Source of the DNA: Ruditapes philippinarum
Taxonomy: Eukaryota
DNA length: 54,421 nt
Assembly (NCBI RefSeq): GCF_026571515.1
Contig: NW_026851951.1
Location: forward strand, 62,001 to 116,421
Direction of reading: 5' to 3'
Shown here: piece by piece, positions 4,040-37,177 of the stretch
Position numbering within the stretch: the stretch's first letter is position 1
How the letters are laid out: the number at the start of each line of letters is the position of its first letter
The notes under the pieces: model-generated
Told to the model about the DNA's origin: nothing
Database searches by the model: none
Seen by the model: the letters and a program-made list of their open reading frames with translations, nothing else
Position numbers and translations under genes: made by a program

Positions 4040-7000
4040 TTACAATGAGTAAATTCTTCTGAGGTTTTCCAAAGCCTCTGCTTGTGTGATTTCATCCCAG
4101 GAGTCAGGTATGTCAGATATATCATATTTATAGTAAATTGCTAACTGGTATTTATATTTTGCAACAAACCATAGCCAAAATTTTGAGCATTCTTGTATAT
4201 TTGCATTTGGCTCGATATCCCAGTCTGGTATATGCTCCCTATAATTTCTAAATAAATGCCATTGTTTTCCACATCGTTTCTTTGCTTCTTTGTTGCATCG
4301 GAAGCCAAACAAATCACAATGGTGCTCTAGATCTGATTGGACATTAAAATTGCAAGATGACAGTACAGCTTTATGTATAAAGTCCTCTCTTGCACCTAAA
4401 CAAGACGATATTCTGTGTTGCAAACTAAAATGGTTCGTTCCTCCATGTATGAAAGCTTTCGCACATGGCTCCCCGCAAAATGGACATTGCTCTGGGCAGC
4501 CCCACACTTGTTGAAATAAGGCTTTTACCATGCTCTCTGGACCTTTGAATTTAATAATTCTCTCGACTTGTTCTTTCGTTATCAATTGTTTTACAATTTC
4601 TTCAGAGGAAGCTTTGATGCTATCAGTAAGCAAACTGCTAAAGTTTTTTATATTTTCTATCTGACTAAACCATTTTGTTACATTTTTGAACTCTGATGTT
4701 CCAATTGGACACATAGAAAAATTCTGCACGAATGATTTGGTCCATTCTTCTGAAGTTGGGCTCTCGTGACGAAATGTCTCATAGCATTTATCAATACTTA
4801 CTTGGATGTCATTATAGAATTCATTGACGACTTTGTTAACTATTTTAGAGAAATTCGTCATGTTGGAATTAAATAGGAAAGTTTTCGCTTTTTTCTTCAC
4901 CCAATCTTTCACAAGATTTCTAGGAGTTTTTATGTATTTTATAAAAGAGTCAAAATCATCAGCAACTGTCAAATCTTCAAGAACTTCAATAATCAAATGA
5001 TATTTCAATTGGGGCAAAGTTTGTTTTAATATAACTTTAACAGTATATTGAATCCTGTCTTGTATTTTGTCCAACAAAATATTTTCTACAATAACCGTGA
5101 TTTGTTTAGCAGCAGTTTCCTCAGCTTTACGGTCTTTAACATATGCAATAAACTGTTCTCTTACTTGAACTTTGTAGTTTGAAATTCTGGCATGTATACC
5201 CCTACTTTTGTGATACTCAGCGTTATGTGCATCAAAACGTGTGGAACAAAAAGCAGTCACGTGAATACATAATTTGATAACTCCTGTTATTTTCAATGAA
5301 ATGTCATTTTCTTGGTTTTGTAACAGCTGAATTTTCTTGTATATCTTGTACAATATATGTTTCACTTCTCGATATGTTAGTTCATTCATGTCTCCTAAAA
5401 ATGTACCCACTAATGTTTCTATCTCACATAATGTTTTATTTATTTCATCTTTCACACGTGACATTTTTATCTCGTTGTCTTGTCTGAAAGATTCTGATGA
5501 AAAGCTGATATCATCCAACACTATGCCGCTGAGGTCGAACGATCCCGTCAAGGTATTGATGATATAAAAGCTATTGTTCCTCCGCTTTTCAAACTCCGTC
5601 TTCAATATAAGTTGCTCTGTACTAAGAATATCGAAAAGGCATCGTTCAAAATTGTCTGCAAGTGACTTTGAAACATCTTCTAGCTCACCAAAATCTAGAA
5701 TCTCCCTGCTAATTGAGTGCCAAGTTTGTTCAAATTTATTCTCTATTTCCTCCATATTTAGACATTCGCCTTTGATGTATTTTGCTACCTGTAGAGATCG
5801 TTCATACATTTTAGCTTCGTGTCCTAAACTGTCTTCTTTGATTTTTAATTCAATACGCGTTCTATCTCGCAATCTAAGCGTTTCAGTCCTTATTCTATCC
5901 TCTAATTCTAAATATAAAGCCTCAGTACGCTTTTTTGCAAAATCCTGCCACTGTACTAGTATATCTTTATATTCACTGTTATCAAAGTATTCATTTACTT
6001 CTTCTACTGCAAGAGAAAGATTTTCAGCCAGAATCGTACGCATCTGTTTAACAAGCCTGTCGGAGGTATCCGGCAAGTGTTGTTGATTTGAGCATTCAGA
6101 AAAATATTTTTGAGACAATATAACGTGTTTGTTTTCAATTTTATCTTCAAATTTGATCAAAATATCTTTTAATGTTTCTTCCATATGAATATAGACTTTT
6201 ATTTCAAGACTATTTCTAAAGCTAAATACAAAATCCTCCGTTAAAACACCTTTCCATAAATCTCTGATATGAATAGCAGCATCACCGAGAGATTTGTAGG
6301 ACTTATCCTTGCATTCTAAAGCTTTCTGTAAAAGAGTGCCTTTTTTGTCGAAAACGCGATCACTGTAAGTAGCATTGACTCTCGCCATAGGAGGGTTGCC
6401 TTGCCAATAACTCGGTAGATACCACACATTTGCATTCGTGTCAAAATCTATGACTTGATGAAATGCTTTTATTTCGCGTATACCTTCTATTTCTCCTGCA
6501 TTCTTTGCTGCACAGTCCAGAGTCTCTATCAATGCATTTAAACCTGTCCTCAAATTTTCTCGAGCAGTTGTATCAATTACGTTTTGGTGTACCAAGAAAA
6601 ATATTTTCCCGATATCAAGTTGCTTATTTGCAAGTTTCAATTTAAGAAATGCGTGTACAACTACTTGTACAATGTCCCGAATTTCATTGGTATTTTCACC
6701 CATGACATTAAGCAGTGTTATATCACCTAACCCCGCTATCACCGTTGATAACTCGTTGTCGTGGTTATGTGTCGTAGAAGTACGTTCCGTAGATCGTAAA
6801 CCTTCTGAATCTATAACTGTCACATAACTGAAAGGAAGACTGTTGTTTGGTGTAATAGGCATGATTTGCATATGTATACCTCTAGTGCATCGCCCAGATT
6901 TCACCGGAAACAAAGATCCAAACAGGGAATTCAGTAATGTTGACTTACCAGAACTTTGAACCCCAAGAACAGACAGTGTTAAACACTTTTTTGAGTGAAT

Positions 7001-8871
7001 ATTTTTCGACACTTGCTCTAAAACCGCTTGAACCCATTCACTCGGAAGAAAAAAATTGTCACCGTCAATGATCTCGAAGATTTGTCCTGACACTATTAAT
7101 GATGTCATAATATGTATTACATTTTGGACTGATGGAAGCTGGTACATTGTGGGATCTGCTTTCATGACAATCACAGACTCATATATGTGTCCTAACTCTC
7201 TAAACATATGTTCTATTCCTAAGTTTGCGTCTTCTATTGATTCTTGTGATTTGGCGATCTCTTCTTTAAGTGTGTTTATATCTTGGTCTTTAGAAGATGT
7301 GTTGCTTTGCAATGCAACCAATTCTTGTCTATGTAATTGATTCTGACGCACTAAAGAAGGTATCTGTTTCCTTTTCTGTCGATCTAACAATATAGAAAGC
7401 CATTTTACTAAATATTGCACCATCATTGGTTTATCTTTGACATTGTCAAGTGACTGAAGAAATAACTTCATTGATCTCGAAATACTTTGAAGCTGAATTT
7501 TCCTTATTTGCTTGATTTTTGCTGTTATAGTGTGAGTTTCTTGTACGTTTTTCATTCTATGTAAACTTCTTATACTGGTACCAATTTGTTTTGAGTAAAT
7601 GAAGTGTACCGGTGTTATGAATCTTTTCATCTGACCTTTGCTTCCAATATCAGTCATAGATTGAAATACTTGGGTGGCTATTACCTTGGCTTTTGCACAA
7701 TCGGTTCTGGTCTCGTCACTTAAATGAGATGAACATTCATTTACACGATCATCTAGAGATTTCACTGCGGAGATCTTGAGTCGAGTAGCTATAAGTTGTC
7801 GAAGTTGTTCTGAAAAATCTTTAGAATTCTTTTGAGTACGTGCTTTATATGTACTGATAATTCTTACAGTAGGTCTTGTTGTAGGTGTCAGCTTTTCAAT
7901 AAACTGTTCGACAGTAGATTTTTTTGTCTTGCTAGCTATGACAATGATTACGGTTGTGAAATTGGTTATCATTTTACAAAGTTCTTCATCGCGTTTAATA
8001 ATGGACGACTCATCCAGTAAAAGAACCAGAATATCAGATATTTTTGAAACAAATGTAATGACCTCTGTCGTAAAATTTTCTTCAATCCTCCCTCTCAAAT
8101 TAAAAAATGCAATTGCATCTTCAAACTTTTTTTCTTTTAAACCACAAATAGGTAGAGTAAACATTTCTACTGTTCCTTTACTGCAAGATTTTGGTGACAT
8201 ACCAAGGGGGCAATTGATATTGAAAAATGTATCTTGAATATCGTCCGAAAGTAAATCATTCATTAATTTAGACTTTGAATAATCTGGTCTACCAAAATTT
8301 GCAAAAGTTACTGTTTTTACAGGGAGCTCTAGAATCTCAAATTCCCTTGTTTCTGTTTCAGGTGTCTGTGATATATTGTAACTTTCTACAACTAAAGAAC
8401 GTAAGGGCCATATTATAAATTCCCAATCATTTAACGATTTGTCATATTGTATAAAAGGAAAAGCTATTTTACACAAATACAACTTTTGAAACAATAATTG
8501 CTTCAGCATGGGGTCGCAGCATTGTAGTGTTATTAGAAATATATCTAAAGGAGAAGTTCCATCACCTTCGTCGTTTGTGTCGTCCACGGTGAAATGATCA
8601 AAGAATTGAACAATAGTTTCAACATCTCGTGCATGCGTCTGTTCTGCTCTTTCTGTATGATCATTGATTATGCCAGAACGATCTCTTGCTTTACTCTGAA
8701 CTCCTAAAATACGACGCAGTAGAATCCATGGCAATTCTTCGTTTGCATAATTATGTTTAACATCAGCTTTAAGATCTATGGACATAATTTCCGCAATTGT
8801 AATTTTTTCTGGGAATTTGTCTGTCAGACCAGTAAGATGTAAAATCTTATCACTGTTGGCTTTCGCTTTGT
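4040..8871 (-). CDS. GVIN1: GVIN copy 1, large terminal exon (VLIG GTPase body)
   Basis: The 1581-aa ORF extends in frame upstream to acceptor ttttatag|AC at 8871 (DKAKANSDKILHLTGLTDKFPEKITIAEIMSID). P-loop LSVLGVQSSGKSTLLN at ~6941-6964, plus DNELST, WxGNPPMA and EDFVFSFRN family motifs. Confidence 0.93.
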
Positions 8872-11800
8872 CTATAAAATAAAGAAAATAATGATAAAAG
8901 ACCTCTATCTATTTAGTAGAATACGGCTTAACTATAGCAGTCACCATGCAAAAAATGAATGTTTAGGAAAATTAAAATAATGCAATACAATAATAAATGA
9001 TTAACAATTAATAATGTGGCTGTTACGTTCTTAAGTTCATAGATGTTTATATATACCTAAAACATAATTATCGTCTTTCGCTTGCTGATTAAAGCATGAA
9101 GCTTATTTGCAAAAATCTCTCTGAAATTATCATGACTGGTGTATCAGGAAAAATCATTGTCTATTCTAACACAGTCGAGTAGGTGTACGCGCTTAAGGTA
9201 GCCGCTATAACCATTTACTCGATGTTTTACTTATGAAATAACGATAACGTTAAATAAATATACCTTTTATTTCATTGTCAGTAGGAAACCGTTTTTCAAC
9301 AATGTTCGACAGTTTGCACCGCTCCGGCACCTCAACTGAATAGCATAAAGCACAAAAATCGAATTTTCCAAACTGATACTGTTGATAACCGATTTAACAG
9401 CAAAAGGTTAGTTTATACAAATTATACAAATTTATTTAAGTTCGATTGTGTTGAAAGCGATAAGCTTATTGAAACGGTTATACAAGTAACAAGCAAAGAT
9501 TGGCGAAAAATAACCAACACATCGTTGATTATGCACTAGAGGATTTGTATAAGCAAACGTTAGCCATATGTGGGTAAATCAGTACGATATCTGACTTAAT
9601 TGCATTCATAAAATAATAAAGAGCTTAAGAAAAGAAAGGAAATCAGGTCTACAAACTCAAATCAAATATGCTAGTACACTCTCCTGCAATGATAATATCA
9701 TAATAAAACAAGAAACTGCAGATTCAGGTTTAGTTTTTTTTCAGGTCCTTGAGTTAAACATAGCACGGGATTCATACTAAAATGATTATTTGCTGCAGCT
9801 TATCAACTTTAAAAAATCAGAACTTAAAGTGATTATCGTGTTAAGTATTTTTGGTATCAGAGTAACTTACCAAGTATATCATCCATGTCTACCTTCCTTT
9901 CCGTTCGTTTGTGGATAGTTTCGGGGATTGATGCTTGGGCTATTATTAAAAGGTTAACTACATCATCTTAATTTATACAGTAATAGACATAATGTACCTT
10001 TATATCATATATCTATATCATTGTTAAATCCTATCTTATAAAATAAAGAAAATGGTACAGTTATGGCACTTGTATGTCAATTTACAGAGAAGGTAAAACA
10101 GCTGAATTCATTAATTTTGTTTAATGATTCAATAACATGGTTTCACTGATACATGTGCATGCAATATATCCTTATCGTGTATGTCCTTTTATTATGAAAC
10201 GTTGTAATACATGACATTTGCACAACCCAAACATATTCATCACATTTCATTAAAAGCGATATGGATTATAGAATGTATTTTTATTATGACTATCAATTAT
10301 GTTGAGAACATGTGCTCTTGGAAAAATCGTTTGTATTGTTAGGGTCTTTTATGTGGTTTTAGTTAAGTGATCTATATAACGTGATAATCTTAGTCATGAT
10401 ATAAAAAAAAAGATGCTTGTAGTAAAATGTTCCAGAATTCGTTTAAAAAGTAAATCTTTTCTTAAAGCAATGCATGACCAAGTTTTGCATCAACATATAT
10501 ATATAGAACTATGCTGCATAATCTGCACAATTGTAGAAGGAACTATACCTGATGTAATTTCCATTGAAGGAGTGGAGGAATATGTATCAATGTCATGTTC
10601 TGGTGGGATGTCTTGTCTATGTGGAACCACTTTCAACGTGTTTTGCTTTAATGTGTGTGTGCTTTTATTAACCACCCGTTGAGCAACTGAAACACATATT
10701 TTAAAAAAATAAGAAAGAAAAATCGTTTGTAACAATTCCATTAAGCAGATGTGTTTACAGGACATATTATGTGTCACCTTCAAACAGTCCATAAAAATTA
10801 GTTATGACGTCCTTGTTTGGCTTAGCTATGTAAGATAAGAAAAAAAACCAATCTAGTTCATGTACGCCAGCAATATTGCACGATTAATACGTTAAAAAGG
10901 AAGTCGTTTAGTGCATGTAATATCGAGTGTATTGCGGCTACTTAGAACACAGTTTAGTCAGTGCTTACCTTCGATCGATTCAAATGTAACTAGGGCTTTT
11001 CCATCGTCATCTACTGTTATATTAGCTATAGTGTCACCGCCTGAACTTTCCTCATCTTCAAAGTATAATTCGAGAAATTCTGTCATTTGCGAATCACCCG
11101 TCTGGAAGCCAGTAACCTCTATTGTCGGGGAAGAGCATATCGAAAAGTTGAAACTCGGTTCTGATCCAAAGCTATCTATATCTAGCACCGCTCCTGCTAT
11201 TTTAATAGGCCTTCTTTGTAACACTGACTGAACAGCTGGAAGATCGATATCAGCATTATTTGTAAATTGTAAAAGAATTTTGTTACGAAGGGATTTTTTA
11301 AAAACGATATTAAAAATGAACTCATTGAATGGAACATACTTAAATGTTACTGTAAATAATACTACCGTCGCATCTGAGCAGTTCACGCGTTCTCTTGATT
11401 GTTTAAATGTAGTCTAAATAAACATAACCGTTCTACTTTCGCTAAATGGTTGAAATATTTTTGAAATGTTACCTAACAATTTGATGTCAAAAGTATACAG
11501 ACAACCCGGTCAATAATTTTTATGCCCATGGTTGATTTATTGATACTCATTTGTATGTAGCAAGATACTACCTGATCGTAAAAATCTCAACTTATAAACA
11601 TGATATACTTTGTAACCGTTCTTGTTTTTAATTTTTATCTAAATTGTTACCAATAAAATCTTTACGTTGTTAAATTTTAAGATTCATGTAACTTTCTTTT
11701 TTACCGTGTAAGTTTAGAATGACAACTCTAAAGACAAAACTTTTTAGGTGCGTTTTACCTGCAAATTTATTTACTGCTCAAATGGTCAAATACAAAGTTC

Positions 11801-13057
11801 TTGCTCAATGGAACAAGTAACAAACTTAAGCCGGCTATCTATTCAAAATACATGGACATAGGTACTTCAAACTTTATTTGCACGAGTACTTCCAGCAACA
11901 ACCGCTTTCCGATCAAAAGGTCAAGGTCACTTAGATGTGTACGTATTAACGATATACAACTGACCATGGCACATTTCAAGAGAACTTTCACACGCACCTT
12001 GATGAGTACTATCCGCCATACCGATTTCATGTTATGAATGTATAACATTTTATTCAATTTATAAGTTTTCCATCCAGGACTGAGGGCTCTGCTCCTCGGA
12101 CAGCTAATTAATTTTATTTTGGTTCGTCATTGCTTAATCCTAAATACGGTTGCATTTCTAAGTGCGTATCTACGTAATATTCGTGGTCTTTTGCGTTTCT
12201 TTTGTTTGTTGTGAGAAAGGGGTTATGCTGTTAAGATGAAATGTAAATGCGACATGCTCAAAACATGCACCGTTCAGACTTTCTGCTATTTTGTTTATAT
12301 GTAATCAGATTGTGCGCATATCTTTGGAGGGGAGCGAGGCCCTTTAGCTGGTCAATATTCATCGCTGTTAGCACATGGAATTTCGAAAATTCATTTCAGT
12401 TCATCAAAAGTATATCTTAATGTATTTCCTCAATCAAGATTAATGGCTTATAATTTCATTTAAAAATACATTGTATACATACTATCAACATTTTCAAACT
12501 GTATAACAGCCGAATGATTTTCTTCGTCAAACTGAATGTTGCTGATTTTTCCTCCACCACATTTTCTTGAACTTTTGAAAAAGAGAGTAAGGTATTGTTT
12601 ATCTATTCCAGCAGGAATTCCTGCAACCTTTATCGTCCTCCTTGCTTGTTCATCGTCTGAAATACAAATTAAATGATCTAATCAGACAAAAAAGGCAAAT
12701 GAATAACATATCATGCCTCAGAAATTATTAAATCTAAGCATATCATGCCTCAGAAATTAATAAATCTAAGCATATCATGCCTCAGAAATTAGTAAATCTA
12801 AGCAAATCATGCCTCAGAAATTAATAAATCTAAGCACATCATGCCTTAGAAATTTCAAACTCCTTACCGTTCTCCTTCGGCCCAGGGTTAGGTTCTATGC
12901 CGGAAAGCAACAAAAGTAGTCCTATGAAAAGTACAGTACCGATAACTTTAATCCCGCCACTTAAGTTCACAGGACAAACAATCGTCACAACATCGACTCC
13001 CGATGAAAATCTGAAAGTTCCTATTCTACCACGGTACGTTTCGATATCGATACCCAT
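4040..13057 (-). CDS. GVIN1: Very large inducible GTPase (GVIN1/VLIG/URGCP-like), copy 1. Spliced CDS join(13057-12868, 12656-12483, 11235-10969, 10686-10549, 9939-9871, 8871-4040), 5670 nt, 1889 aa: 2A-like leader + 2 RRM-like domains + VLIG GTPase
   Basis: All five introns are GT-AG with phase-1 junctions and the joined frame is open. The same six exons occur in copy 2, with exons 1-5 of identical length. The terminal exon has G1 GVQSSGKS, GRCTRG, G3 DSEG and the family C-terminal CPFCxEPC...H motif. Confidence 0.88.
9871..9939 (-). CDS. GVIN copy 1 coding exon 5 (linker, AQASIPETIHKRTERKVDMDDIL)
   Basis: aatag| acceptor, |gtaagt donor, 69 nt, open in phase 1. Equivalent exon at 32330-32398. 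Confidence 0.75.
10549..10686 (-). CDS. GVIN copy 1 coding exon 4 (end of RRM2 + linker)
   Basis: tttcag|TT acceptor, G|gtatag donor, 138 nt. VAQRVVNKSTHTLKQNTLKV completes the RRM-like fold. Confidence 0.8.
10969..11235 (-). CDS. GVIN copy 1 coding exon 3 (end of RRM1 + most of RRM2, PARP14/PARP10/NMI-type)
   Basis: cttccag|CT acceptor, G|gtaagc donor, 267 nt. TIEVTGF...LELYFEDEESSGGDTI...ALVTFES matches the LxLYFE...SGG...A.VTF pattern of this RRM subfamily. Confidence 0.87.
12483..12656 (-). CDS. GVIN copy 1 coding exon 2 (RRM1; absent from the ORF track)
   Basis: tttcag|AC acceptor, A|gtatgt donor, 174 nt. Translates DDEQARRTIKVAGIPAGIDKQYLTLFFKSSRKCGGGKISNIQFDEENHSAVIQFENVD. The 3 differences from copy 2 are all synonymous. 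Confidence 0.87.
12708..12856. repeat. 32-bp tandem repeat, ~5 units, in the intron after the 2A exon
   Basis: tcatgcct recurs at 12711, 12743, 12775, 12807 and 12839. Confidence 0.95.
12868..13057 (-). CDS. GVIN copy 1 coding exon 1: hydrophobic leader ending in 2A-like motif SGIEPNPG|P
   Basis: ATG at 13057 sits just after a pyrimidine-rich acceptor. Donor AACG|gtaagg at 12868 is in phase with exon 2. 5 synonymous and 1 non-synonymous differences from copy 2. Confidence 0.82.
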
Positions 13058-13261
13058 ACTGAAAGGGGAAACGAGATGTTAAAATGTATAGCATGTAAAT
13101 TCACATATTCAGGATATTGCGATATCGTTTTTCGCAGCTATTGCATTATAAAACATAAATATGCTAGGTTTTTAAATGAAAATATGAGTTCCGTTATGAG
13201 CAAAACGATTCTGTTATGAGTACTGAGTATAAAGGTAAATTATTGATTATCATTACTGTAT

Positions 13262-13476: not shown

Positions 13477-16400
13477 CTTTTTGTATAAATATATTGCGCT
13501 ACATTTAAAATGGTTTTACTATCTACCAGCAAGGAATGAGGCCCGACGACATTGACAAATGGGCCCAAGGTTTCCAGACCTATTTTCATTTAGTAAATGT
13601 TTTTTACCTGGGCGAGTCGGTTCGTCATTCAATCTTTGTGTGTTTTGGTTGCAAGATTCACGAGATTGTACAGAAGTTTCGATAAATGATTTAATATTCT
13701 ACATATATATGTTTTAGAACGTTAAATATTTTTCGCAGCCGAGGTATATGGTATTTCCATTGCAATATCAAACCAAGTAGATGTACATGTATAAAGCTGA
13801 CATTTCATCAGTTGTATTTGTATTAAATTTAGAAATGTATTCATATTGTGACTTTTAAATCTCGAAACATGTTATCCTGAATAAAATACTTATCTTGTAT
13901 AGCATAATTGAGTTTAAAATTTGGAACGTTTTAGTTAAAAGGGACTATTATTTCGGTTCCGATATAAGTGATCAATTCTTTAAAGATACACTAGTTTTTT
14001 ATACATATATTTTATTCCTTTATAAATTTCTCGTTTTCGGTATACTTAAATTGATTTTTTCTAAATATATTGATTATATTATGAAAATATTGATCCTACT
14101 TTTTTATAACCTTGTGTTTTTTTCAATTTGATATTTAATAGGTTTGTATTCACTGTATGTGTTTTGAAGTATGAAACTTTACAATACGAAAAGCGTGGAT
14201 CAATTGGAACACGAGGACAATTTTCACGTATTAACCATGTGACTTTAGATGTAATAAAAAAGGATGCAATCTTATCTTTTTTATGTATTTGTATGACAGA
14301 AAATGAAGTCGAATTTGATAAAATAATGATCAAATAATATGTGTGACAAAATATATTAAAGACTGTCTCTTATTAACCAATTATAACCAAACTCGAAATA
14401 TCGTCAACTGTTGTACTTTCGTTTTCTAAAAACAAACAAACTTTAAGGTAGACGAAAAATGAAACAAAATTAGTATATGAAAACTACAAAAAAGGTCTGT
14501 TCAATTTTCATAATAATTGCAAATACGTCGTCACAATTCCGTCGTACTTACTTCTTGGCCACTGGGTAATTTTTTTTTATATAGATATCGAGATCTTTAC
14601 TATATATTTTGAAATCCTAAGCGTAAATCAGAGCAAATTACGAACCTCTGAAAGTTAACTAGTCTCGAACAAAATTTTGATCATTGATATTACACTAAAA
14701 GAGTACCGTCAATTACACCACACTACATTTGATTTACGGCGATACTCGTATTGCCCATTTTACTCAAGGTCGAGTAATCATCAAACTTACCTTACTATAG
14801 GTGATGATTATTCGATATGAATAAGATATGACGTTTCAGTTTAAGTCAATAATAATCCATTAAAGATATTTATAATTTAGCCGATAGTTTAAGTTTAATA
14901 ATGAATTTGATATTGAACCAGTTCGATTTTAAGTTAAAGCTGTTACTTTTATTAAGATTTGATCACCTAGATCTTTTACCTACCCTTTTATAAAGAATAA
15001 AAGAAATTCTAAAAAAGAAAAAATCTATTATTAAAAAAAAAAATATTAAAAAAAAATATATTTTGAAATTATCTTAAAATTATTTAAAAAAAAAAAAGGT
15101 TTTTATATGAAGAATAAAGTAATTTTGGTGTGGCACACAAGAAACAACAAATCCAAAATCGAAAACCGCTAAAGCCCATGGCGACTAGAAGCAATTATCG
15201 ATAATAACATAGATAAACAAGTCCATGGCAACCTTAAACGTGCGTAAAAACTAAAACCCAGTTAGCATTTAGTGCAAGAAAACCAACCGTTGAATCGTAA
15301 TAATTAAATATATCTTTAATGTAGTACAATTCAGAAATGAATAATGCAAAACGTTTCAACGACATTAGGTTACAAATAGTTGTCCAAATATCCTAAAGTT
15401 TCTGGTCTATTTCCCAAAATAACTTTCGACAAAATTACGGGCATGCATTTTTAAAAAGACATGTAATAATAACTTTACGAGGTCGATCATCGATCGCGCT
15501 AAATGTTTATATACTAACATGAAACTGAACAAGTGAAAAACATCAAATTTAAGAGAATTAAAACGTACCTGTTTGTTACTATCTCAAAACGCCAACTGAT
15601 TTTTACCCCGTCTTGAACGTCGATTGAGGTGATATCGATTTTAACAGAACAAGGAAGTTCTTCATTACTACAGGTTATATATCAATTTTAATAGTTTCAA
15701 AAGATAAATTATTAACTATTTTTGCGTTAAAATGATCAATAAGACAACCACGCGCCGTTGTTGTAAGTTTTCTTTTCTTTTTCTTTTTCTTTGTTTTCAT
15801 GGGTTATACATGGCACAATGTACAAAAAATCTAACCATAATACTGCAATTACGGCCCACGGTAGTTTTATCATCAATACTTGCGAATGACAGTGCACTCG
15901 TGCACTATAACGTCACAATCAATGGCCTTTAAAAACGAAATACAGATATCGAAAATTTAAACGTATACTTTTATGCCAGAAAAGCACTTATGTACCCTTT
16001 TTTCGTGCATTAATATCTACGTAAGTCCTCGGACTTATCAAATCCCTCACCGTATTTGTGCAAATATGGACTGTATACTCGGCGCAGGCACCGCCATAAC
16101 AGCCACAGAACATGCATAATGACGAGAACTATTCTGAATACGAGCACTATATAATATGTATAAGCAATATTGCAATTTGTGTTTATCACACCTTTGTTTT
16201 GAACTCAGTCGTTGCTCTTTAAATGACATTTAAATGATCTAAGAATAAATATTTTGACAATTTTGCTGCTAAAAACGTTTCATGAGACATTTCGTAAGCA
16301 GTCGAATTTATTTTCTTTATAGATAACAATGGACAATTCTTCTGAAAATATATCAATATAATAAATAACTATATACGGCTCGAATATAACTTCTTGCGAA

Positions 16401-26620: not shown

Positions 26621-29600
26621 TTATAATGAGTAAATTCTTCTTAGGTTTTCCAAAGCTTCCTTTTGTGTAATTTCATCCCAGGAGTCCGGTATGTCAGATA
26701 TATCATATTTATAGTGAATTGCTAACAGGTATTTATATTTGGCCACAAACCATAGCCAAAATTTTGAGCATTCTTGTATATTAGCATTTGGCTCAATATC
26801 CCAGTCTGGAATATGCTCCCTATAATTTCTATACAAGTGCCATTGTTTGCCACAACGTTTCTTTTCTTCTTTATTGCATCTGAAGCCAAACAAATCACAA
26901 TGGTGCTCTAGATCTGATTGGACATTGAAATTGCAAGATGACAGTGCAGCTTTATTTATATAGTCCTCTCTTGCACCTAAACAGGACGATACTCTGTGTT
27001 GCAAACTAAAATGATTTGTTCCTTCATGTATGAAAGCTTTCGCACATGGCTCCCCGCAAAATGGACATTGCTCTGGGCAACCCCACACTTGTTGAAATAA
27101 GGCTTTTACCATGCTCTCCGGACCATTGAACTTAATAATTCTCTCGACTTCTTCTATCATCAACAGTTTTTCTACAATTTCTTCAGAGGAAGCATTGATG
27201 TTACCAGAAAGCAATCCGCTAAAGTTGTTCATATCTTCTATCTGACCAAACCATTTTGTTACATTTGAGAACTCTGATGTTCCAATTGGACACATAGAAC
27301 AATTTTGCACGAATGATTTTGTCCATTCTTCTGATGATGGGCTCTCATGACGAAATTTCTCATAACATTTATCAATACTTGCGTGGATGTCATTATAGAA
27401 TTCATTGACGACTTGGTTAACTATTTTAGATAAATTCGTCATGTTGGAATTAAATAGAAAGGTTTTCGCTTTTTTCTTCACCCAATCTTTCACAAGCTTT
27501 CTAGGACTTTTTATGTATTCTGTAAAAGAGTCAAAATCATCAGCAACTGTCAACTCTTCAAGAACTTCAATAATCAAATGATATTTCAATTGTGGCAAAG
27601 TTTGTTTTAACGTAACTTTAACAGCATATTGAATCCTGTCTTGTATTTTGCTCAACAAAATATTTTCTACAATAACCGTGATTTGTTTAGCAGCAGTTTC
27701 CTCAGCTTTACGGTCTCTTACAAATGCTATGAACTGTTCTTTTACTTGAACTTTGTAGTTAGAAATTCTTGCAAGTATACCCCTACTTTTGTGACATTCA
27801 GTGTTATGCGCATCAAAACGTGTGACACAAAAATCAGTCACGTGAATAAACAATTTGACAAGTCCTGTTATTTTCAACGAAATGTCATTCTCTTTGTTCT
27901 GTAACAGCTGAATTTTTTTGTATATCTTGTACAATATATGTTTCACTTCTCGATATGTTAGTTCATTCATGTCTCTTAAAAATGTATCCAATAATATTTC
28001 TATCTGACGTAATGTTATATTTACTTCATCTTGCACACGTGACATTTTCATATCGTTGTCTTGTCTGAAAGAATCTGATGAAAAGCTGATATCTTCCAAC
28101 ATTATGCGGCTAAGGTCGAACGATCCCGTCAAGGTATTGATGATATAAAAGTTGTTGTTACTCTGCTGTTCAGTCTTTTCTAGTGGATTCAAACTTTTCC
28201 GTTTTACTAACTCCGCCTTCAAAATAAGTTGCTCTGTACTGAGAATATCGAAAAGGCATCGTTCAAAATTGTCTGCAAGTGACTTTGAAACATCGACTAT
28301 TTCACCAAAATCTAGAATCTCCCTGCTTATTGAGTGCCAAGTTTGTTCAAATTTATTCTCGATTTCCTCCATATTGAGACATTCGCCTTTAATACTTTTT
28401 GCTACCTGTAGAGATCGTTCGTACATTGTAGCTTCGTGTCCTGAACTGTTTTCTATGATTTTCAGTTCGACACGCGTTCTATCTTGCAATCTTATCGTTT
28501 CAGTCCTAATTCTACCCTCTAATTCTATATGTAAAGACTCAATACGTTTTTTTGCAAAATCCTCCCACTGTAGTATTATATCTTTATATTCACTGTTATC
28601 AAAGTATTCATTTACTTCGTCTACTGCAAGAGACATACTATCAGCCATATTTTTACGCATCTGTTTAACAAGTCTATCAGCAGTATCCGACAATTGTCGT
28701 TGATAAAAACATTTAGAAAAAAATTTTGAGACAAAATATTGTTCTTTTCAAATTTTTTTTCAAATTTTTATCAAAAAATTTTTTTAATGTTTTTCCATTA
28801 AATAGCTTTTTTTCAAGCTATTTTTTAAAAATAAATACAAAATCCTCGTTAAAAAAACCTTTCCATAAATTTATATGAATGCAGCATCACCGAGAGATTT
28901 GGGGAAACCCTTATTTAAAACTTTCTGTAAAAGTGCCTTTTTGTCGAAAAAGCGTCATGTAGTTCATTTACTCTCGCCCAAAGGGGGGTTGCCTTGCCAA
29001 TAATCGGTAGTTTCCACACATTTCTTCGTGTCAAATCTATGACTTGATGAAAAACTTTATTTTTGCGATACCCCTTTTTTTTCCTGCATTTTTGCGGGAC
29101 AGTCCCGAGTCTCTTCAAAGCATTTAAACCTGTCCTCAAAATTTCTCGAGCAGCTGTATCAATTACGTTTTGGTGTACCAAGAAAAATATTTTTCCGATA
29201 TCCAGTTGCTTATTTGCAAGTTTCAATTTAAGAAACGCGTGTACAACTACTTGTACAATGTCCCGAATTTCATTGGTATTTTCACCATTACATTTAGCAA
29301 TGTTATATCACCTAATCCTGCTATCACCGTTGATAACTCGTTGTCGTGGTTATGTGTCGTAGAAGTACGTTCCGTAGATCGTAGACCTTCTGAATCTATA
29401 ACTGTCACATAACTGAAAGGAAGACTGTTGTTTGGTGTAATAGGCATGATTTGCATATGTATACCTCTAGTGCATCGCCCAGATTTCACCGGAAACAAAG
29501 ATCCAAACAGGGAATTCAGTAATGTTGACTTACCAGAACTTTGAACCCCAAGAACAGACAGTGTTAAACACTTTTTTGAGTGAATATTTTCCGACACTTG

Positions 29601-31447
29601 CTCTAAAACCGCTTGAACCCATTCCACCAAAAAATGGGAAAAAAAAAATTGTCCCGTCAATTATCTCGAAGATTTGCCCTGACTCTATTAAGGATGCCAT
29701 AAATGTATAATTTTTAACTGCATGGAATTTGGTACATTGTGGATCTGCTTTCGTTACAATCACAGACTCATATATGTGTCCTAACTCTCTAAACATATGT
29801 TCTATTCCTAAGTTTGCGTTTCTATTGATTCTTGTGATTTTGGCGATCTCTTCTTTAAGTGTTTTATGTCTGTCTTTAGTAAGATTGCAGTTTGCTTTCA
29901 ATGCAACCCAAGTTTTTGTCTATGTAATTATTTTGAGTACTAAATAAAGGAATTTGTTTTTTTTCCTTTCTGTGTCGATCAACAATATGACATCCATTTT
30001 ACTAAATATTGTACCATCATTGGTTTGTCTTTGATATTGTCCAATGACTGAAGAAATAACTTCATGGGACTCGAAATACTCTTAAGCTGTTTTTCCCTTA
30101 TTTGTTTGATTTTTGCTGTGGTAGTGTGAGTTTCTTGTACGGTTTTCAATCTATGTAAACTTCTTATACTGGAACCAAGTTGTTTTGAGTAAATGAAGTG
30201 TACCGGTGTTATGTAACTTTTCAACTGAACTTTGCTTCCAATATCAGACATAGATTGAAATACTTGGGTGGCTATTACCTTGGCTTTTGCACAATCGGTT
30301 CTGGTCTCGTCACTTGCATGAGATTGACATTCATTTACACGATCATCTAGAGATTTCACTGCGGCGATTTTGAGTCGAGTAGATATCAGTTGTCGAAGCT
30401 GTTTTGAAAAATCTTTAGAATTTATTTGAGTATGTGCTTTATATGTACTTACAATTGTAAGAGTTTTTGTAGGTGTTAGCTTCTCAGTAAACTGTTTAAC
30501 AGTTGATGGTTCCGTCTGGTTAGCTATGACAATGATAACGGTTGTGAAATTGGTAATCAGTTTACAGAGTTCTTGATCTTGTTTTATAATGGACGACTCA
30601 TCCAGTAAAAGAACAAGAATATCAGATATATTGGAAACCAATGAAATGACCCCTGTAGTGAAATCTTCTTCAATCCTCCCCCTCAAATTAAAAAATGCAA
30701 TTGCATCTTCAAATTTTTTTTCTTTTAAACCACCAAAAGGTAGAATGAACATTTCTACGGTTCCGTTACTGCAACGCTTTGGTAACATACCAAGAGGGCA
30801 ATTCATATTGAAAAATGTATCTTGAATATCGTCCGAAAGTAAATCATTCATTAATTTAGACTTTGAATAATTTGGTCTACCAAAATTTGCAAAAGTTACT
30901 GTTTTTAAAGGGAGCTCTAGAATCTCAAATTCCCTTGTTTCTGTTTCAGATGTCTGTGATATATTGTAACTTTCTACAACTAAAGAACGTAAGGGCCATA
31001 TTATAAATTCCCAATCATTTAACGATTTGTCATACTCTATAAAAGGAAAAGCTATTTTACACAAATACAATTTTTGGAACAATACTTGTTTAAGCATGGG
31101 GTCGCAGCATTGTAGTGTTATTAGAAATATATCTAAAGGAGAAATTCCATCACTTTCGTCGCTTGTGTCGTCCATAGAGAAATTTTCAAAGAATTGGACA
31201 ATAATTTCATGCACCTGTTCTGCTCTTTCTGTATGATCATTGACTACGCCAGAATGATCTCTTGCTTCACTCTGAACTCCTAAAATACGACGCAGTAGAA
31301 TCCACGGCAATTCTTCCTTTGTATAATTATGTTTAACATCAGCTTCAACATCTATCGTCATAACTTCCGTAATTGTAATTTTTTCTGGGAATTTGTCGGT
31401 CAAACCAGTAAGTTGTAAAATCTTAGCACTGTTGACTTTTGCTATGC
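26621..31447 (-). CDS. GVIN1: GVIN copy 2 terminal exon (VLIG GTPase body), with many small indels in the middle
   Basis: Acceptor ttttatag|GC at 31447. The N-terminal 474 aa and C-terminal 690 aa are open and closely similar to copy 1. P-loop GVQSSGKS is retained. Confidence 0.82.
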
Positions 31448-34400
31448 CTATAAAATAAAAAATATTGTATGAAAGATCTCCATCTATTTAGTAGAATACT
31501 GTTTAACTAGTTTTTCGAAATATCATCAGTAACCATGCAAAAAAGGAATGTTAATGAAAAAGAGACAATGCAATACAATACTAAATGATTGGAAATTGAT
31601 AATGTGGTTGTTACGTTCTTAAGTGGTAGAGAATTATATAAACCTTAAACATAATTATCGTCTTTCGCTTGCTGATTTAAGCATGAATCGTATTTGCAAA
31701 AAAAATCTCCCTGAAATTATCATGACTGGTGTATCAGGAAAAAATCATTGTATGTACTGACACATTCGAATTGGGGTACGCGCTTTATGTAGCCACTACA
31801 CCCATTTACTCGTTGTTTAACTTATGAAATAACGTTTCATAACTATACCTTTTATTTCATTGTCAGTAGGAAACCTTTTTTCAACAATTTCCGACTGTTC
31901 GCACGGCTCCGGCACCTCAACTGAATAACATAAACCACAAAAATCGAATTTTTCGAAGTAACATATTTAAGAGAGCAAATGATTATACAAGTAATAGCCA
32001 ATGATTGACGAAAATAACCAGCACATCGTCGATTATGCTCTAGACGATTTGTATAAACAAACCTAAGCAATATGGCTAAATCAGTACGATATCCGACTTA
32101 ATTGCATTCATAATATGGTAAAGTGCTTAAGAAAAGAAAAGAAAATCAGGTCTGCAAATTCATACCAAATAATCTACACTCTCCTGCAATGGTAATGTCA
32201 TAATAAAACAAGGTTAAAAACTGCATCTTCAGGTTGAGATTTTTTCTCAGGTCCTTGAGTAAACACGCGATTCATACTAATCTACTTTAATTAAAAAATA
32301 AAAAGTATTTTGGTCTCAGTGTAACTCACCAAGTATATCATCCATGTCTACCTTCCTTCCCGTTCGTGTGTAGATAGTTTCGGTGATTGATTCTTTGGCT
32401 ATCATTAAAAAGGTTAACTATATCATCTTTATTTATACAGAAGTAGACACACCAACCTTTATTCATATCATTGTTAAATCATATTGCATAAAATAAAGAA
32501 GATTTATGGCACTTGTATATTAATATATAGAGAAGGTTAAACAGGTGAATAACTTCCTTTTGTTAAATGTTTTAATAAAATGGTTTCAATGATACAGGTG
32601 TAGTGCTTTTTTATCTTGTATGTCCTTATATTGTGAAACGTCATGATACATGACATTTGCACAACCCAAAACATAATCATCCACATTAGATTAAAAGCGA
32701 TATAGATTATATTATGTCTTTTTATGAATATTAATTATGTTAAGAACATGTTTACGTGCAAAAAGATCACTGATTTGAGAAAAGTGTTCTTGGAAAAATC
32801 GTTTGTACGAGAGGTGTTCCAAAAATAATACCATTTGCCTTGTTTTCCTACACTTAAAGTAATTTCATCATTTTAAATGTCTCTGGCCCTCAAAATACTA
32901 CCCATCTACCTGAACACACCATTTGAGTACCTTAATCTAAATTTGAAAGCAGATTTCATACTCTTTAATTGGGACACTCATTAGGTACTGATAAACAGCA
33001 AACCCAATGGCATTTCTCGACTTGTATCTCTTTCCAGACAATTGGAATTTGAGTTTTGGAAACAAGAAATTGTGACAAGGGGCCAAGTCTGGTGAATATA
33101 GCTGATGCGGAAAGACAGTAATTTTTTTTTGATGCCAGCCACAAGCCTAGCCTTATGAGCGGGGGCATTATCGTGCTAAAGCCGGAGGTGCTCGATTCCT
33201 GTGCTTGGGCGGCGAAGTTTTTAGCAGGTCTTCAGTTTTCAGAACAATATTTTTGTAGAGCTTTGCTGTTACCGTTTTGCCTTTTGGTACCCGATTTCGC
33301 ATTACCGGTCCCTTATTATCAAAGAAATCACATACAAAACTTTCTTAACAGTGCTTTGGTGCTTGGCAATACTTGGACGTTTTGCATTTTAGTGGCCAAA
33401 TTCTATCTGAACATTTCCAATTTGGTTCAAAATAGTAAAATAGATAAAAACAGAATCCCTAAAGAAAGCCCAACACGGCAAAATTGAAAATGTTGCAGGC
33501 TCGGTTTGATTGAGCCTGTTCATGGACGGTACTGGAAAGTGCAAGTTACCGTCCACACCCCCTAGCACCGGCTTAAGCAGAATTTAAACCCATGCCTAAT
33601 CACCAGTAACGAAGTTGTGGAAAGCCTTTTTGTTATATTTGGGATAAATTTTGAGAAGCGTTTTTGCATTTGCAACACGGGTTCCCTTTTGTTCGTCTGT
33701 TAGCAAATGGGGTCTACATCTTGCATTTATTTTCCGAAGTTGAAGATTTTTTTTAAATACCATGGACTCGTGCTTAAGACAAGTTCGTCAACCGTGCTAA
33801 ATTTCTCACAGTGTATCGGGCATCTTTGTTTAGCATATTCCTGATTTTTTCTATGTTGATTTTCGTCGTTATTGTTGCAGGACGACCTAGGCGAGTAGCA
33901 TCTTTGACTTGCTACTGATCGGTTTTAAATTAAGCAACCCACCTACAAATAGATCTGTGAGACATTTCACCTACCTTATAAATGTCGCACACCTCAGGGT
34001 GAATATCTACAGGCTTTATGCCAAGTAAAGTCCGACCTTTTATATAAGCCCTAATTTCAAGCACATCTTTAGCTCTTCTACCAGCCATTTCATGTACAGT
34101 ATAGTGAAATGAATACGCTATAAAGCAATTTATCAAGGTCAGTGAAATTGTGAACGAGATTTTCACCTGTGTAATGCTTCTGTGATTATTCTATCGGTCC
34201 AAAGTGGTTTATAATACATAGCACACGATATTGACGAGATAATGCACAAATAACATTATTTTTGGAACACCCCTCTACTGTTGGGGACTTTATGTGTTTT
34301 AGTTAAGTGATAACTATAACGTAATAATTTAAGTTTATTTTAAATGTTATTTTAAAACATTACGCTTGCTAGTAAAATTTTCCAGAGTTCGTTTAAAAAG

Positions 34401-37002
34401 TATATCTTTTTTGACAGCAATTCATGGCCAAGTTTTGCATATACATATATATAGATCTATGCTGCACAATTTTAGAAGGAAGTATACCTGATGTAATTTC
34501 CATTGAAAGAGTAGACGAATCGGTATTATTGTCATGTTCCGGTGGGTTGTCTCTCCTATTTGGTACCACTATCAACGTGTTTTGCTTTAATGTATGTGTG
34601 CTTTTATTTACCACTCGTTGAGCAACTGAAAAACATAAAAAGAATTTTTAAAAAGAATTAAAAAAAAATATCATTTGTAACAATATAATTTTGCAGGTGT
34701 GTTAATTTGAAATAGTATGTGTAACCTTTAAACAGTCCATAAAAATTGGTAATGTTACTAACAGTTATAACGCCTTGCTTGGCTTAGCTATGTAAGATAA
34801 AAAAAACAATCTAGTTCATGTACGCCAGCAACATTGCAAGATTAATACGCGGAAAGAAAGTCGTTTTAATATTATCGAGTATATTGCAGCAACTTAGAAC
34901 ATTACTGTCTAGTCAGTGTTTACCTTTGATCGATTCAAATGTAACAAGGGCTTTTCCATCGTCATCTATTGTTATATTAGCTATAGTGTCACCGCCTGAA
35001 CTTTCCTCATCTTCAAAGTATAATTCGAGAAGTTCTGCCATTTGCGAATCACCCGTCTGGAAGCCAGTAACCTCAATTGTCGGAGAAGAGCATAAAGAAA
35101 AGCTGAAACTCGGTTCTGATTCAGAGCTATCTATTTCTAGGACAGTTCCTGCTATTTCAATGGGCCTTCTTTGTAACACTGATTGAACAGCTGGAAGATC
35201 GAATTCAGCATTATTTGTACAAGATTTTTTTACGAAGGGATTTTTAAAAACGATATTAAAAAATGAATTCATTGAAAAGAACATACTTGAATGTTACTGT
35301 AAATAATTCTACCGTCGCATCTGAGCAGTTCAAGACAAGTTCTCTTGATTGTTTAAATGTAGTGCAAATAAACATAACCGTTCTACTTTCGCTATATGGT
35401 TGAAATATTTTGAAATGTTATCTAACAATTTGAGGTTAGAAATATACAGACAACCCGGTCAATAAAAATGTTATCCCCATGGATGATTTATTGATACTCA
35501 TGTATATAACAAGATCAAAGTAGCTGATCGTAAAAATTTCAACTGATAAAGATAACATGCATTGTAGCCGTTTTTGTCCTACTTTCTATTTATATTGCTC
35601 CAATAAAAAATCTCAACTGATAAACATATTATGCTTTGTAACCGTTTTTGTCTATAATTTATATCTTTATTGTAACCAATAAAATCTTTACGTATACGTT
35701 GTTAAATTTTAAAATTCATGTAACCTTCTTTTTTACCGTGTTCTACCTGCCAAATTTATTTACTGGTACAATGATCAAAGTCAAAGTTCTAGCTCAATGG
35801 GTAAGCTAGTTATCTATTCAAAATGCATGGACATAGGAACTTCAAACTTTATTTGCACGAGTACTTTAATGACTACTTCCAACAATAACCCTTTTCCGGT
35901 CAAAAGGTCAAGTTCACTAAGATGTGTACGTATTAATGACATATAACTGACCATGGCGCATTACAAGAGAACTTTCACAAGCACCTTGATGAGTCCTACC
36001 CGCCATACCGATTTCATTTAATGAATGTATAACATTTTATTCAATTTATAAGTTTTCCATCCAGGACTGAGGGCTCTGCTCCTCGGACAGCTCATTAATT
36101 TTAATTTAGTTCCCAATTGGTTAATCCTAAATATGGTTGCATTACTAAGTGCGTATCTACGTTATATTCGTGGTTGTTTGCGTTTCTTTTGTTTGTTGTA
36201 CAATGTGAAAGGTGTTATGCTGTTAAGATGAAATGTAAATGCGACATGCTCAAAACATGCACCGTTCAGACTTTCTGCTATTTTGTTTCTATGTAATCAG
36301 ATTGTGCGCATATCTTGGGAGGGCAACGAGGCCGTTTAGCTGGTTAATATTCACCGCTGTTAGCACATGGGATTTCAAAAAGTTATTTCAGTTCATCAAA
36401 AATATATCTTAATGTATTTCCTCAATCAAGATTTATGGCTTATAATTTCATTTAAACATACATTGTATGCATACATACTATCAACATTTTCAAACTGTAT
36501 AACAGCCGAATGATTTTCTTCGTCAAACTGAATGTTGCTGATTTTTCCTCCACCACATTTCCTTGAACTTTTGAAAAACAGAGTAAGGTATTGTTTATCT
36601 ATTCCAGCAGGAATTCCTGCAACCTTTATCGTTCTCCTTGCTTGTTCATCGTCTGAAATACAAATTTATTATTAAATTTAAGCATATCATGCCTCAGAAA
36701 TTAATAAATCTAAGCATATCATGCCTCAGAAATTATTAAATCTAAGCTTATCATGCCTCAGAAATTAATAAATCTAAGCTTATCATGCCTCAGAAATTTC
36801 AAAATTCCTTACCGTTCTCCTTCGGCCCAGGGTTAGGTTCTATGCCGGAAAGCAACAAAAGTAGTCCTATGAAAAGTACAGTACCGATAACTTTAATTCC
36901 GCCACTTAAATTCACAAGACAAACGATTGTTACAACATCGACTCCCGATGAAAATCTGAAAGTTCCTATTCTACCACGGTACGTTTCGATATCGATACCC
37001 AT
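26621..37002 (-). CDS. GVIN1: GVIN/VLIG copy 2. join(37002-36813, 36652-36479, 35190-34924, 34625-34488, 32398-32330, 31447-26621); frameshifted at ~28700-29990 (probable assembly error, alternatively a pseudogene)
   Basis: Exon-for-exon paralog of copy 1 with intact splice sites. ORFs 29979-31403, 29530-29901, 29247-29660, 28915-29226 and 26621-28693 are collinear pieces of the terminal exon. Confidence 0.8.
32808..34275 (-). mobile_element. Decayed mariner (Tc1/mariner) transposon in intron 4 of GVIN copy 2
   Basis: TA|CGAGAGGTGTTCCAAAAATAAT ... ATTATTTTTGGAACACCCCTC|TA. Transposase remnants include the HTH start IRAYIKGR...ICRWV, VTGD*AWV/YYFEP, HDNAPAH and YSPDLAP. The empty site is present in copy 1 at ~10335. 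Confidence 0.92.
33437..33586 (+). mobile_element. ~150-bp double-hairpin element nested in the mariner transposase
   Basis: Nearly identical to 16519-16663; it splits the transposase WV|YYFEP codons. Confidence 0.85.
34924..35190 (-). CDS. GVIN copy 2 coding exon 3 (RRM-like)
   Basis: 267 nt with the same splice positions as 10969-11235. Confidence 0.85.
36479..36652 (-). CDS. GVIN copy 2 coding exon 2 (RRM1)
   Basis: 174 nt; protein identical to copy 1 exon 2. Confidence 0.85.
36671..36800. repeat. 32-bp tandem repeat, ~4 units, in the equivalent intron of copy 2
   Basis: tcatgcct recurs at 36687, 36719, 36751 and 36783. Confidence 0.95.
36813..37002 (-). CDS. GVIN copy 2 coding exon 1 (2A-like leader)
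   Basis: 190 nt, MGIDIETYRGRIGTF...LLLLLSGIEPNPGPKEN, donor G|gtaagg. Confidence 0.82.
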
Positions 37003-37177
37003 TGTGCTGAAAGAGGAAACGAGATGTTAAAATGTATAGCATGTAAATTCACATATTCAGGATATTGCCATATCATTCCGCAGCTATTGCATAATAAATA
37101 AATATACTGTATTAGGTTTTTAATGAAAATATGAGTTCCGTTATGGACAAAACGATTCAGTATGAAGGTGAATTATT

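Follow-up and report, generated by a model that had tools for sequence, protein, structure and literature searches.

A 54,421-nt stretch of the genome of the clam Ruditapes philippinarum (NCBI RefSeq assembly GCF_026571515.1, contig NW_026851951.1, positions 62,001 to 116,421; hereafter the window) holds two copies, A and B, of a gene for a giant GVIN-type GTPase. In both, a short exon with a StopGo (2A-like, ribosome-skipping) sequence is spliced in front of the RRM and GTPase exons. We regard it as probable that the copy A exon is a domesticated transposon-type StopGo leader, which would release a hydrophobic peptide and throttle or de-anchor the RRM-GVIN GTPase behind it. The leader is under purifying selection, its exon family is conserved across bivalves and bivalve orders, and it is kin to transposon leaders. 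The family spans the genome and the bivalves and is not confined to this gene pair. The gene of copy A is intact from the leader through the RRM to the GTPase and has the following features (window coordinates; slashes mark splice sites).

15571-15678, minus strand: 5' exon, probably non-coding, located by tblastn with XP_060588512.1; ends ..AAC AG/GTACGT and joins the leader exon
12868-13058, minus strand: leader exon; acceptor cag/T, ATG at 13057, 63 codons plus 1 nt, phase 1 donor G/GTAAGG
13019-13057, minus strand: conserved N-terminal motif MG(I/V)DIxTYRxRIG, codons 1-13, from the invariant residues of the paralogue alignment
12896-12946, minus strand: 17-residue hydrophobic helix VIGTVLFIGLLLLLSGI, codons 38-54, from Kyte-Doolittle values and insertion energy
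12878-12901, minus strand: StopGo core G-I-E-P-N-P-G↓P, codons 53-60, read from the sequence; a G-type core as in PMC12846837
12657-12867, minus strand: intron 1, with a 32-nt tandem repeat at 12707-12854 (4.6 copies)
12483-12656, minus strand: exon 2, first PARP14-type RRM, 174 nt, phase 1-1 (PF23085, E = 4e-11; junction as in P0166)
10970-11317, minus strand: exon 3, second RRM/NID-like domain, approximate limits (tblastn; PF23085, E = 8.6e-5)
10547-10693, minus strand: exon 4, linker, approximate limits (tblastn)
9872-9940, minus strand: exon 5, 100% identical to P0166 residues 257-279
9265-9336, minus strand: exon 6, 100% identical to P0166 residues 280-303
4040-8872, minus strand: giant last exon with URGCP domain, URGCP/GVIN GTPase, C-terminal region and stop codon (P0166 residues 304-1913, 100%)

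Read from the ATG at 13057, the leader exon encodes MGIDIETYRGRIGTFRFSSGVDVVTIVCPVNLSGGIKVIGTVLFIGLLLLLSGIEPNPG↓PKEN (abbreviated, MGIDIETYRGRIG...LLLLLSGIEPNPG↓PKEN), and the predicted break falls between GGG (12883-12881) and CCG (12880-12878). The last base of the exon, the G at 12868, stands directly before the GTAAGG donor. The intron 1 acceptor is tttcag (12657-12662) and the AC at 12656 completes the codon GAC; past this splice the frame reads D-DEQARRTIKVAGIP, in its longer form DDEQARRTIKVAGIP, to the end of exon 2 at 12483 (A/GTATGT). The RefSeq model of copy A (P0166, 1913 aa) begins at the leader Met and reads ...NPGPKENDDEQARR... over the same junctions; its residues 1-63 are identical to the leader exon product, and it is 100% identical to the window across exons 5-7. 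Full-length comparisons were made with the RefSeq proteins P0016 and P0166, and exons were searched singly. PARP14-type RRM domains are represented by PF23085 and PF23222; exon 2 scored 43.3 bits on PF23085, above the curated 24-bit cutoff, and exon 3 came just under it (23.0 bits). The giant exon (4040-8785 in this search) matched PF25683 (E = 1.5e-94) and PF25496 (E = 6.5e-48), with the URGCP and GTPase domains in one large exon.

The counterparts in copy B are as follows.

40611-40718, minus strand: 5' exon, counterpart of copy A 15571-15678
36813-37006, minus strand: leader exon; ATG at 37002, donor after 36813; present in XP_060588512.1
36479-36652, minus strand: exon 2 (RRM); acceptor at 36652, same layout as in copy A
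26621-31448, minus strand: giant exon, broken into at least five frames; the RefSeq model stops at 877 aa

An earlier note, made from the sequence of the window alone, had described the leader exon, its phase and both splice junctions, and all of these agree with the RefSeq models P0166 and XP_060588512.1. It had also placed an in-frame leader, RRM exons and GTPase in both copies. The junctions are indeed present in both, and the model of copy B (P0016, which is XP_060588512.1, 877 aa, "up-regulator of cell proliferation-like") has the same leader junction. Only copy A is intact as a leader-RRM-GTPase gene, because the copy B giant exon shifts frame four times or more and its model is cut short. 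The read-through product, given there as 1889 aa, has 1913 aa in RefSeq. Nor is the leader exon 1, as the note had supposed: 5' exons lie upstream in both copies, the acceptor is 1-4 nt 5' of the leader ATG, and the leader exon is the first coding exon. We take the leader Met as the copy A start codon because the incoming frame has stops just upstream and no in-frame ATG.

The proposed core conforms to the definition of the StopGo octapeptide, (D/G/C/N)(V/I)ExNPG↓P (PMC12846837). In the numbering of the 2A 20-mer, G12, E14, N16, P17, G18 and P19 were invariant and position 13 was I or V in an alignment of 29 clam paralogues. The earlier proposal that G(V/I)ExNPGP is a bona fide core is well founded: RNA viruses have G at position 12 as often as D (Li et al. 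2026, PMC12846837). A degenerate E-P-N-P-G-P pattern matched only two sites in the window, the leaders of copies A and B, where none was expected (100 shuffles). In viruses the main upstream class consists of LLLLSG-like hexapeptides, and one L-rich upstream motif ends in (A/G/S)G at position 12 and is associated with P at position 15 (PMC12846837). The window sequence FIGLLLLLS-G, running into LLLLLSG-IEPNPGP, matches this class in sequence, including the P at position 15, and L7 and L8 are invariant among the paralogues. The leader thus resembles viral G-type sequences such as that of infectious flacherie virus (TRAEIEDELIRAGIESNPGP) in its core (A/S)G(I/V)ExNPGP, with G at position 12, often P at position 15 and a Leu-rich stretch before it. 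It differs from them in belonging to a cellular gene, in its N-terminal position instead of one between polyprotein domains, and in that its upstream product is a 59-aa hydrophobic peptide and not a folded protein. The 17-residue helix has a Kyte-Doolittle mean of 2.64 and a summed insertion energy of -2.46 kcal/mol. It ends five residues before Gly59, at a position fixed in 27 of the 29 paralogues, and would therefore lie inside the exit tunnel as the ribosome reaches NPG↓P.

In the mechanism that we propose, the leader would act through four parts: the N-terminal motif MGxDIxTYRxRIG, a variable linker, the 17-residue Leu-rich helix and the G-type core (S/A)G(I/V)ExNPG↓P. Once the P site holds Gly59 and the A site Pro60, the helix and core, lying within the exit tunnel, would prevent the peptide bond from forming, and the 59-residue leader would be hydrolysed from its tRNA. 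Some ribosomes would restart at Pro60 and yield a leaderless cytosolic RRM-GTPase beginning PKEND; others would fall off, so that the leader would also hold down the yield of the giant protein; a minor read-through product would retain the hydrophobic helix at its N-terminus. Our inference extends to activity in the clam, to the proportions of these three outcomes and to what becomes of the released peptide. The mature N-terminus of leader-bearing proteins is probably Pro60 and not Met1, and signal-peptide and transmembrane predictions on the annotated proteins would for this reason be misleading.

Related peptides have been assayed. A preprint by Snell & Matreyek (bioRxiv 10.64898/2026.06.17.732966) reports 2A-like 20-mers tested in human cells, and the entries of its supplement listed include the Mercenaria orthologue and sister peptides of the pattern xxFIGxLLxxxG(I/V)ExNPGP:

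SLAFIGLLLVMAGIESNPGP: Mercenaria GVIN XP_045168672.2 (P0018), falloff_reduced
ALLFIGLLLLRAGIEPNPGP: sister peptide, skipping
AVLFIGVLLLKAGIESNPGP: sister peptide, skipping
AVLFIGLLLLKGGIEPNPGP: sister peptide, skipping
AVLFIGVLLLIAGIESNPGP: sister peptide, skipping, reduced
ALIFIGLLLLRAGIEPNPGP: sister peptide, falloff, reduced

Here falloff_reduced denotes release without efficient restart together with a lower protein level. The Mercenaria 20-mer and at least seven sister peptides were active, by skipping, falloff or both, and among the table entries listed every native sister peptide had release activity. The "Stop" step, release at NPG↓P, is thus supported by experiment for this peptide class in human cells, and the "Go" step is variable. 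The Mercenaria score indicates attenuation at least as much as dual targeting. It also favours a reading in which the leader is a pure translational brake, the stall-helix and NPGP mainly lowering the yield of potentially dangerous immune effectors, by release without restart or by quality control, with the separation of the two products incidental. Many of the listed sister peptides are likewise annotated with reduced protein levels, the preprint ties poly-Leu helices upstream of the core to this reduction and proposes a role as expression regulators, and the 5' exon of the gene holds a conserved upstream open reading frame. These data come from a heterologous 20-mer assay in human cells, though, some listed sister peptides skip normally without reduction, and a brake has no more need of the conserved N-terminal motif than has skipping. 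We consider a pure brake possible, and hold to it only tentatively.

The upstream reading frame is out of frame with the leader and has 20 codons, MK(N/D)FLVLLKSISPQSTFKT(G/V) followed by a stop; it is kept in the 5' exons of both copies (15600-15665 and 40640-40705, minus strand). Lying upstream of the leader ATG, it may add another level at which translation is controlled.

StopGo sequences at the N-termini of immune proteins have a precedent, rightly cited in the earlier note. In Strongylocentrotus purpuratus, a sea urchin, NLR proteins carry N-terminal 2A-like signal sequences with partial recoding and two protein fates (Roulston et al. 2016, PMC4981915). The bivalve case is similar in that expanded innate-immune NTPase genes have a predicted StopGo, with a hydrophobic stretch before it, at the very N-terminus of their products; P0166 starts with the leader at residue 1, with GVIN/URGCP downstream. 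It differs in the following. The animals are Mollusca (Bivalvia), and the leader has 57-72 aa in the clam and about 125-130 aa in Mya, against 26 aa in the sea urchin. It adds the conserved motif MGxDIxTYRxRIG, its core is of G type and not GD type, and it lies on its own phase-1 exon; its hosts are GVIN, PARP14-RRM, nSTAND3, NACHT, LRR and CARD proteins and not only NLRs. Dual targeting on the sea-urchin pattern, the reading offered in the earlier note, with a cytosolic skipped product and an unskipped product tethered to or translocated across membranes by the helix as signal-anchor, in a regulated ratio, would have this assayed precedent (PMC4981915). The helix is hydrophobic enough for membrane insertion, the leader stands at residue 1 in most family members, and the listed sister peptides skip partially and not completely. 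Dual targeting fits less well because the leader has a conserved, charged N-terminal part of 37 residues. The helix begins only at residue 38, and the 60-aa leader with its hydrophobic stretch at residues 38-54 is not the short (about 26 aa) cleavable signal peptide of the sea urchin. Moreover, the downstream RRM and GTPase domains are typical of cytosolic proteins and about 1850 residues would have to be translocated, and the listed assay class of the orthologue is falloff/reduced, not a mixture of skipped and unskipped product. On balance we find dual targeting rather doubtful.

A six-frame search of the 1.4-Gb clam genome with the leader gave 53 matches. In each of the 29 leader loci that were read, the acceptor precedes the ATG by 1-10 nt, the frame reaches the end of NPGP in 57-72 codons, and two or three further codons lead to a phase 1 G/GT donor. 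Nineteen residues are invariant in the alignment of these 29 paralogues (M1, G2, D4, Y8, R9, R11, I12, G13, G40, F44, G46, L48, L49, G53, E55, N57, P58, G59 and P60). A genome profile built from the 29 aligned leaders (profile A2) separated two tiers: about 32 matches of 86-113 bits in short open frames, which are the exon-type leaders, and about 30 full-length matches (1-60) of 27-41 bits, each opening an intronless open reading frame (ORF) of 200-430 aa. Among the 22 leader loci with 10 kb of sequence, the next exon is a PARP14-type RRM in 16, and a GVIN giant exon lies within 10 kb in four (the two window copies, L031 and L032). The shared downstream exons of clusters 1, 2, 4, 5, 6 and 17 had no Pfam match. 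The distribution of the about 32 phase-1 leader exons is best explained by spread through duplication and exon shuffling onto immune-type genes, and ribosome skipping, thought to be rare in cellular genes, looks routine in this genome.

The leader exons of the two window copies differ by five synonymous changes and one non-synonymous change, a ratio of non-synonymous to synonymous substitution (dN/dS) of 0.06. Pairwise leader values ranged from 0.06 to 0.58 overall and from 0.2 to 0.58 in the other close pairs. In more diverged pairs the flanking introns drop to 45-50% identity and are effectively unalignable. Each invariant residue uses 2-5 synonymous codons across the paralogues: four for G2, five for R9, four to five for L7 and L8 (20-mer numbering), and in the core AAC/AAT for N16, CCT/CCA/CCG for P17, GGG/GGA/GGT for G18 and CCG/CCT/CCA for P19. 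Because invariant residues are encoded by so many synonymous codons, constraint acts on the peptide, on StopGo core and N-terminal motif alike.

Such constraint bears on the idea of a leader that, inherited from a transposon, does no more than anchor the protein in a membrane or act as a signal sequence, with NPGP a relic that causes no recoding in the clam. Odon et al. (2013, PMC3708506) tested several 2A-like sequences of retrotransposons without long terminal repeats (non-LTR) that had a canonical motif and yet were inactive, which lends this idea some substance. We nevertheless judge it very unlikely: E14, N16, P17, G18 and P19 are invariant in 29 paralogues with saturated synonymous sites, the listed native sister peptides all have release activity, and 142 of 145 database relatives (among the best 150 of 327) retain P19.

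We hold it extremely improbable that the exon is an artefact of annotation, in which gene predictors wrongly fused the gene to a piece of transposon lying upstream of it. A long interspersed nuclear element (LINE) with a 2A leader does lie in the same window. Yet both copies and the 29 paralogues retain the splice sites with matching phase, dN/dS between the copies is as low as stated, and the open frames around the leader exon are short (72-79 aa) and are not transposon ORFs; they contain no APE, reverse transcriptase (RT) or ORF1 domains, the RRM and GTPase being reached via the splice. This architecture recurs in independent RefSeq models from three species. Finally, a paralogous leader is joined to its downstream exon on assembled contigs of 1.4-1.6 kb (P0008), which suggests spliced transcripts, as these are too short for introns.

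The profile was also searched against 1.84 billion proteins, of which 327 matched at E ≤ 1e-3. Among the best 150 of the 327, the N-terminal motif stood at residue 1 in 113 and position 12 was G in 127. In Mercenaria, Mya, Mactra and Mizuhopecten the leader heads GVIN, PARP14-type RRM, nSTAND3, NACHT, LRR and CARD proteins; named matches include a Mizuhopecten nSTAND3 protein and a Mactra protein with HEPN_DZIP3 and NACHT. Pfam annotation of leader-bearing proteins gave URGCP/GVIN, PARP14-RRM, NID, nSTAND3, NACHT, LRR and CARD (the last in P0165). A weaker protein tier carried Helitron Rep/PIF1, OTU and zinc-finger domains and included one thrips zinc-finger protein. An ESM Atlas search with the 60-aa leader returned no usable match.

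Two of the bivalve proteins have unusual layouts. In P0165 (Mercenaria mercenaria GVIN) the leader is followed by a CARD (PF00619, precomputed annotation) in place of the RRMs and then by the GVIN GTPase; the leader has therefore been combined with different adaptor modules. Residues 1-265 of P0164 (Mya arenaria GVIN isoform X2) form two tandem leaders of ~130 aa each, with NPGP at 129 and 262 and an extra hydrophobic segment in each, and from one such mRNA two leader peptides could be set free ahead of the GTPase.

The relatives extend to transposons. Odon et al. (2013, PMC3708506) place the 2A sequences of non-LTR retrotransposons 40-80 aa into the ORF, and N-terminal examples from mollusc CR1 and Ingi elements are active in vitro (PMC3708506). 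The clam leader shares this position, with NPGP at residues 57-60, and profile A2 matches over 1-60 at the starts of LINE ORF1-like ORFs and of Helitron proteins. At least ten tier-2 places in the clam genome are also matched, at coincident coordinates, by P0145, an ORF1p-like protein with an L1 Transposase_22 domain; on these coordinates the tier-2 matches there are identified as LINE ORF1-type leaders. They, the Helitron leaders and the window LINE have the same architecture as the gene leader. The clam leader differs from retrotransposon leaders in that it is spliced as an exon into host genes of single-copy type, is under purifying selection and stands before RRM and GTPase domains, where they precede APE, RT or ORF1. 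That tier 1 forms a tight clade speaks for a single domestication with later spread by phase-1 exon shuffling, and the leader family most likely descends from one domesticated transposon leader.

Two Helitron Rep/PIF1 helicase proteins from public metagenome assemblies (P0149 and P0138) open with the leader profile MGIDIQLYRRRIA...AGLETNPGP, which makes the leader common to different transposon classes; P0149 also has a C-terminal APE domain. The LINE in the window occupies 45487-51205 on the plus strand. It has a coiled-coil ORF1-like ORF at 45487-46587, an APE endonuclease at 47779-49053 in ORF2 and the reverse transcriptase at 49619-51205 in a separate open frame. Its ORF2 start reads ..NEWRVAIGLFYN.. 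(..EWRVAIGLF..), then a hydrophobic stretch, then LLIISGDVESNPGP, with NPGP at about 48115-48126; the motif WRxxIGxF, the hydrophobic stretch and GDVESNPGP all resemble the leader. We do not claim this LINE as the donor, its alignment to the leader profile being limited to the 2A part (8.9 bits).

Several points weigh against our proposal of a StopGo leader that throttles or de-anchors the GTPase. The ORF2 leader of the window LINE aligns to the profile only in the stretch just mentioned. The reporter data concern 20-mers in human cells and not the 60-residue leader on clam ribosomes, the window's own 20-mer is not among the supplement entries listed, and the falloff score of the Mercenaria orthologue there means that the "Go" step may be inefficient. 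Support for the junctions consists of RefSeq models and paralogue conservation. Finally, StopGo needs only about 20-30 residues and so leaves the conserved N-terminal motif unexplained.

N-myristoylation was considered for this motif by eye. Of the consensus G-{EDRKHPFYW}-x-x-[STAGCN]-{P}, the invariant G2 is present, but Q or E occupies position five, and the candidate was dropped. A bolder idea is that the leader exon encodes a product of its own, a released 59-residue tail-anchored micropeptide that shows the invariant cytosolic motif MGxDIxTYRxRIG on membranes and is co-made by about 32 immune-type genes with different effectors. Tail-anchored topology is suggested because the sole hydrophobic helix ends five residues from the C-terminus of the released peptide. 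We think this unlikely. Were it true, the shared micropeptide could be a common membrane docking or signalling tag for GVIN, STAND NTPase, LRR and CARD effectors, or alternatively a sensor coupling effector output to the state of the translation machinery, and host-gene StopGo would be a genuine bicistronic device inherited from transposons.

Some of this material was already on record. The copy A gene model is in RefSeq, and one orthologous peptide is in the supplement of the Snell & Matreyek preprint. The earlier note's statement that such leaders are not described for GVIN proteins holds for the main text of that preprint, which does not contain the word "GTPase", and fails for its supplement, which has one GVIN entry (10.64898/2026.06.17.732966). 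The leader is akin to the "Leucine stall-helix" peptides of that library, among whose listed members are the Mercenaria orthologue XP_045168672.2 and its sister peptides. The library consists of isolated 20-mers, and the leader exon, the N-terminal motif, the spread over gene families and the conservation in bivalves are not described in the preprint. A literature search returned no paper describing the leader on bivalve immune genes. We found no description of the leader exons as a family, of their N-terminal motif, of their distribution among immune gene families across bivalves or of their tie to transposon leaders.

Reviews and primary papers up to 2026 consider StopGo rare in cellular genes, with sea-urchin NLRs as the sole worked example (PMC12846837; 10.64898/2026.09.24.754024). 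The bivalve leader exon would be a second, independent and much broader cellular case. It can now be asked why the NTPase and GTPase families of marine-invertebrate immunity have taken up transposon 2A leaders again and again, whether the purpose is dosage control, localisation or a co-produced peptide, and what role the conserved N-terminal motif plays.

Minor observations concern intron 1 and the decay of copy B. A 32-nt tandem repeat (plus-strand consensus CATATCATGCCTCAGAAATTAATAAATCTAAG) occupies most of intron 1 in both copies, with 4.6 units in copy A (12707-12854) and about four in copy B (36670-36800), copy A being 52 nt longer. The GTPase exon of copy B lacks a stretch, and one patch of 113 residues is 99% identical to copy A, against 62-82% for the patches beside it, a pattern suggestive of a gene-conversion tract within a copy that is decaying. 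The RefSeq model of copy B has 86 extra residues upstream of the leader Met (40611-41497, minus strand), including an Asp-rich low-complexity stretch. The exons behind this extension are absent or unspliceable in copy A (acceptor AG>AT), and it is probably an over-extended coding sequence in the decaying copy.

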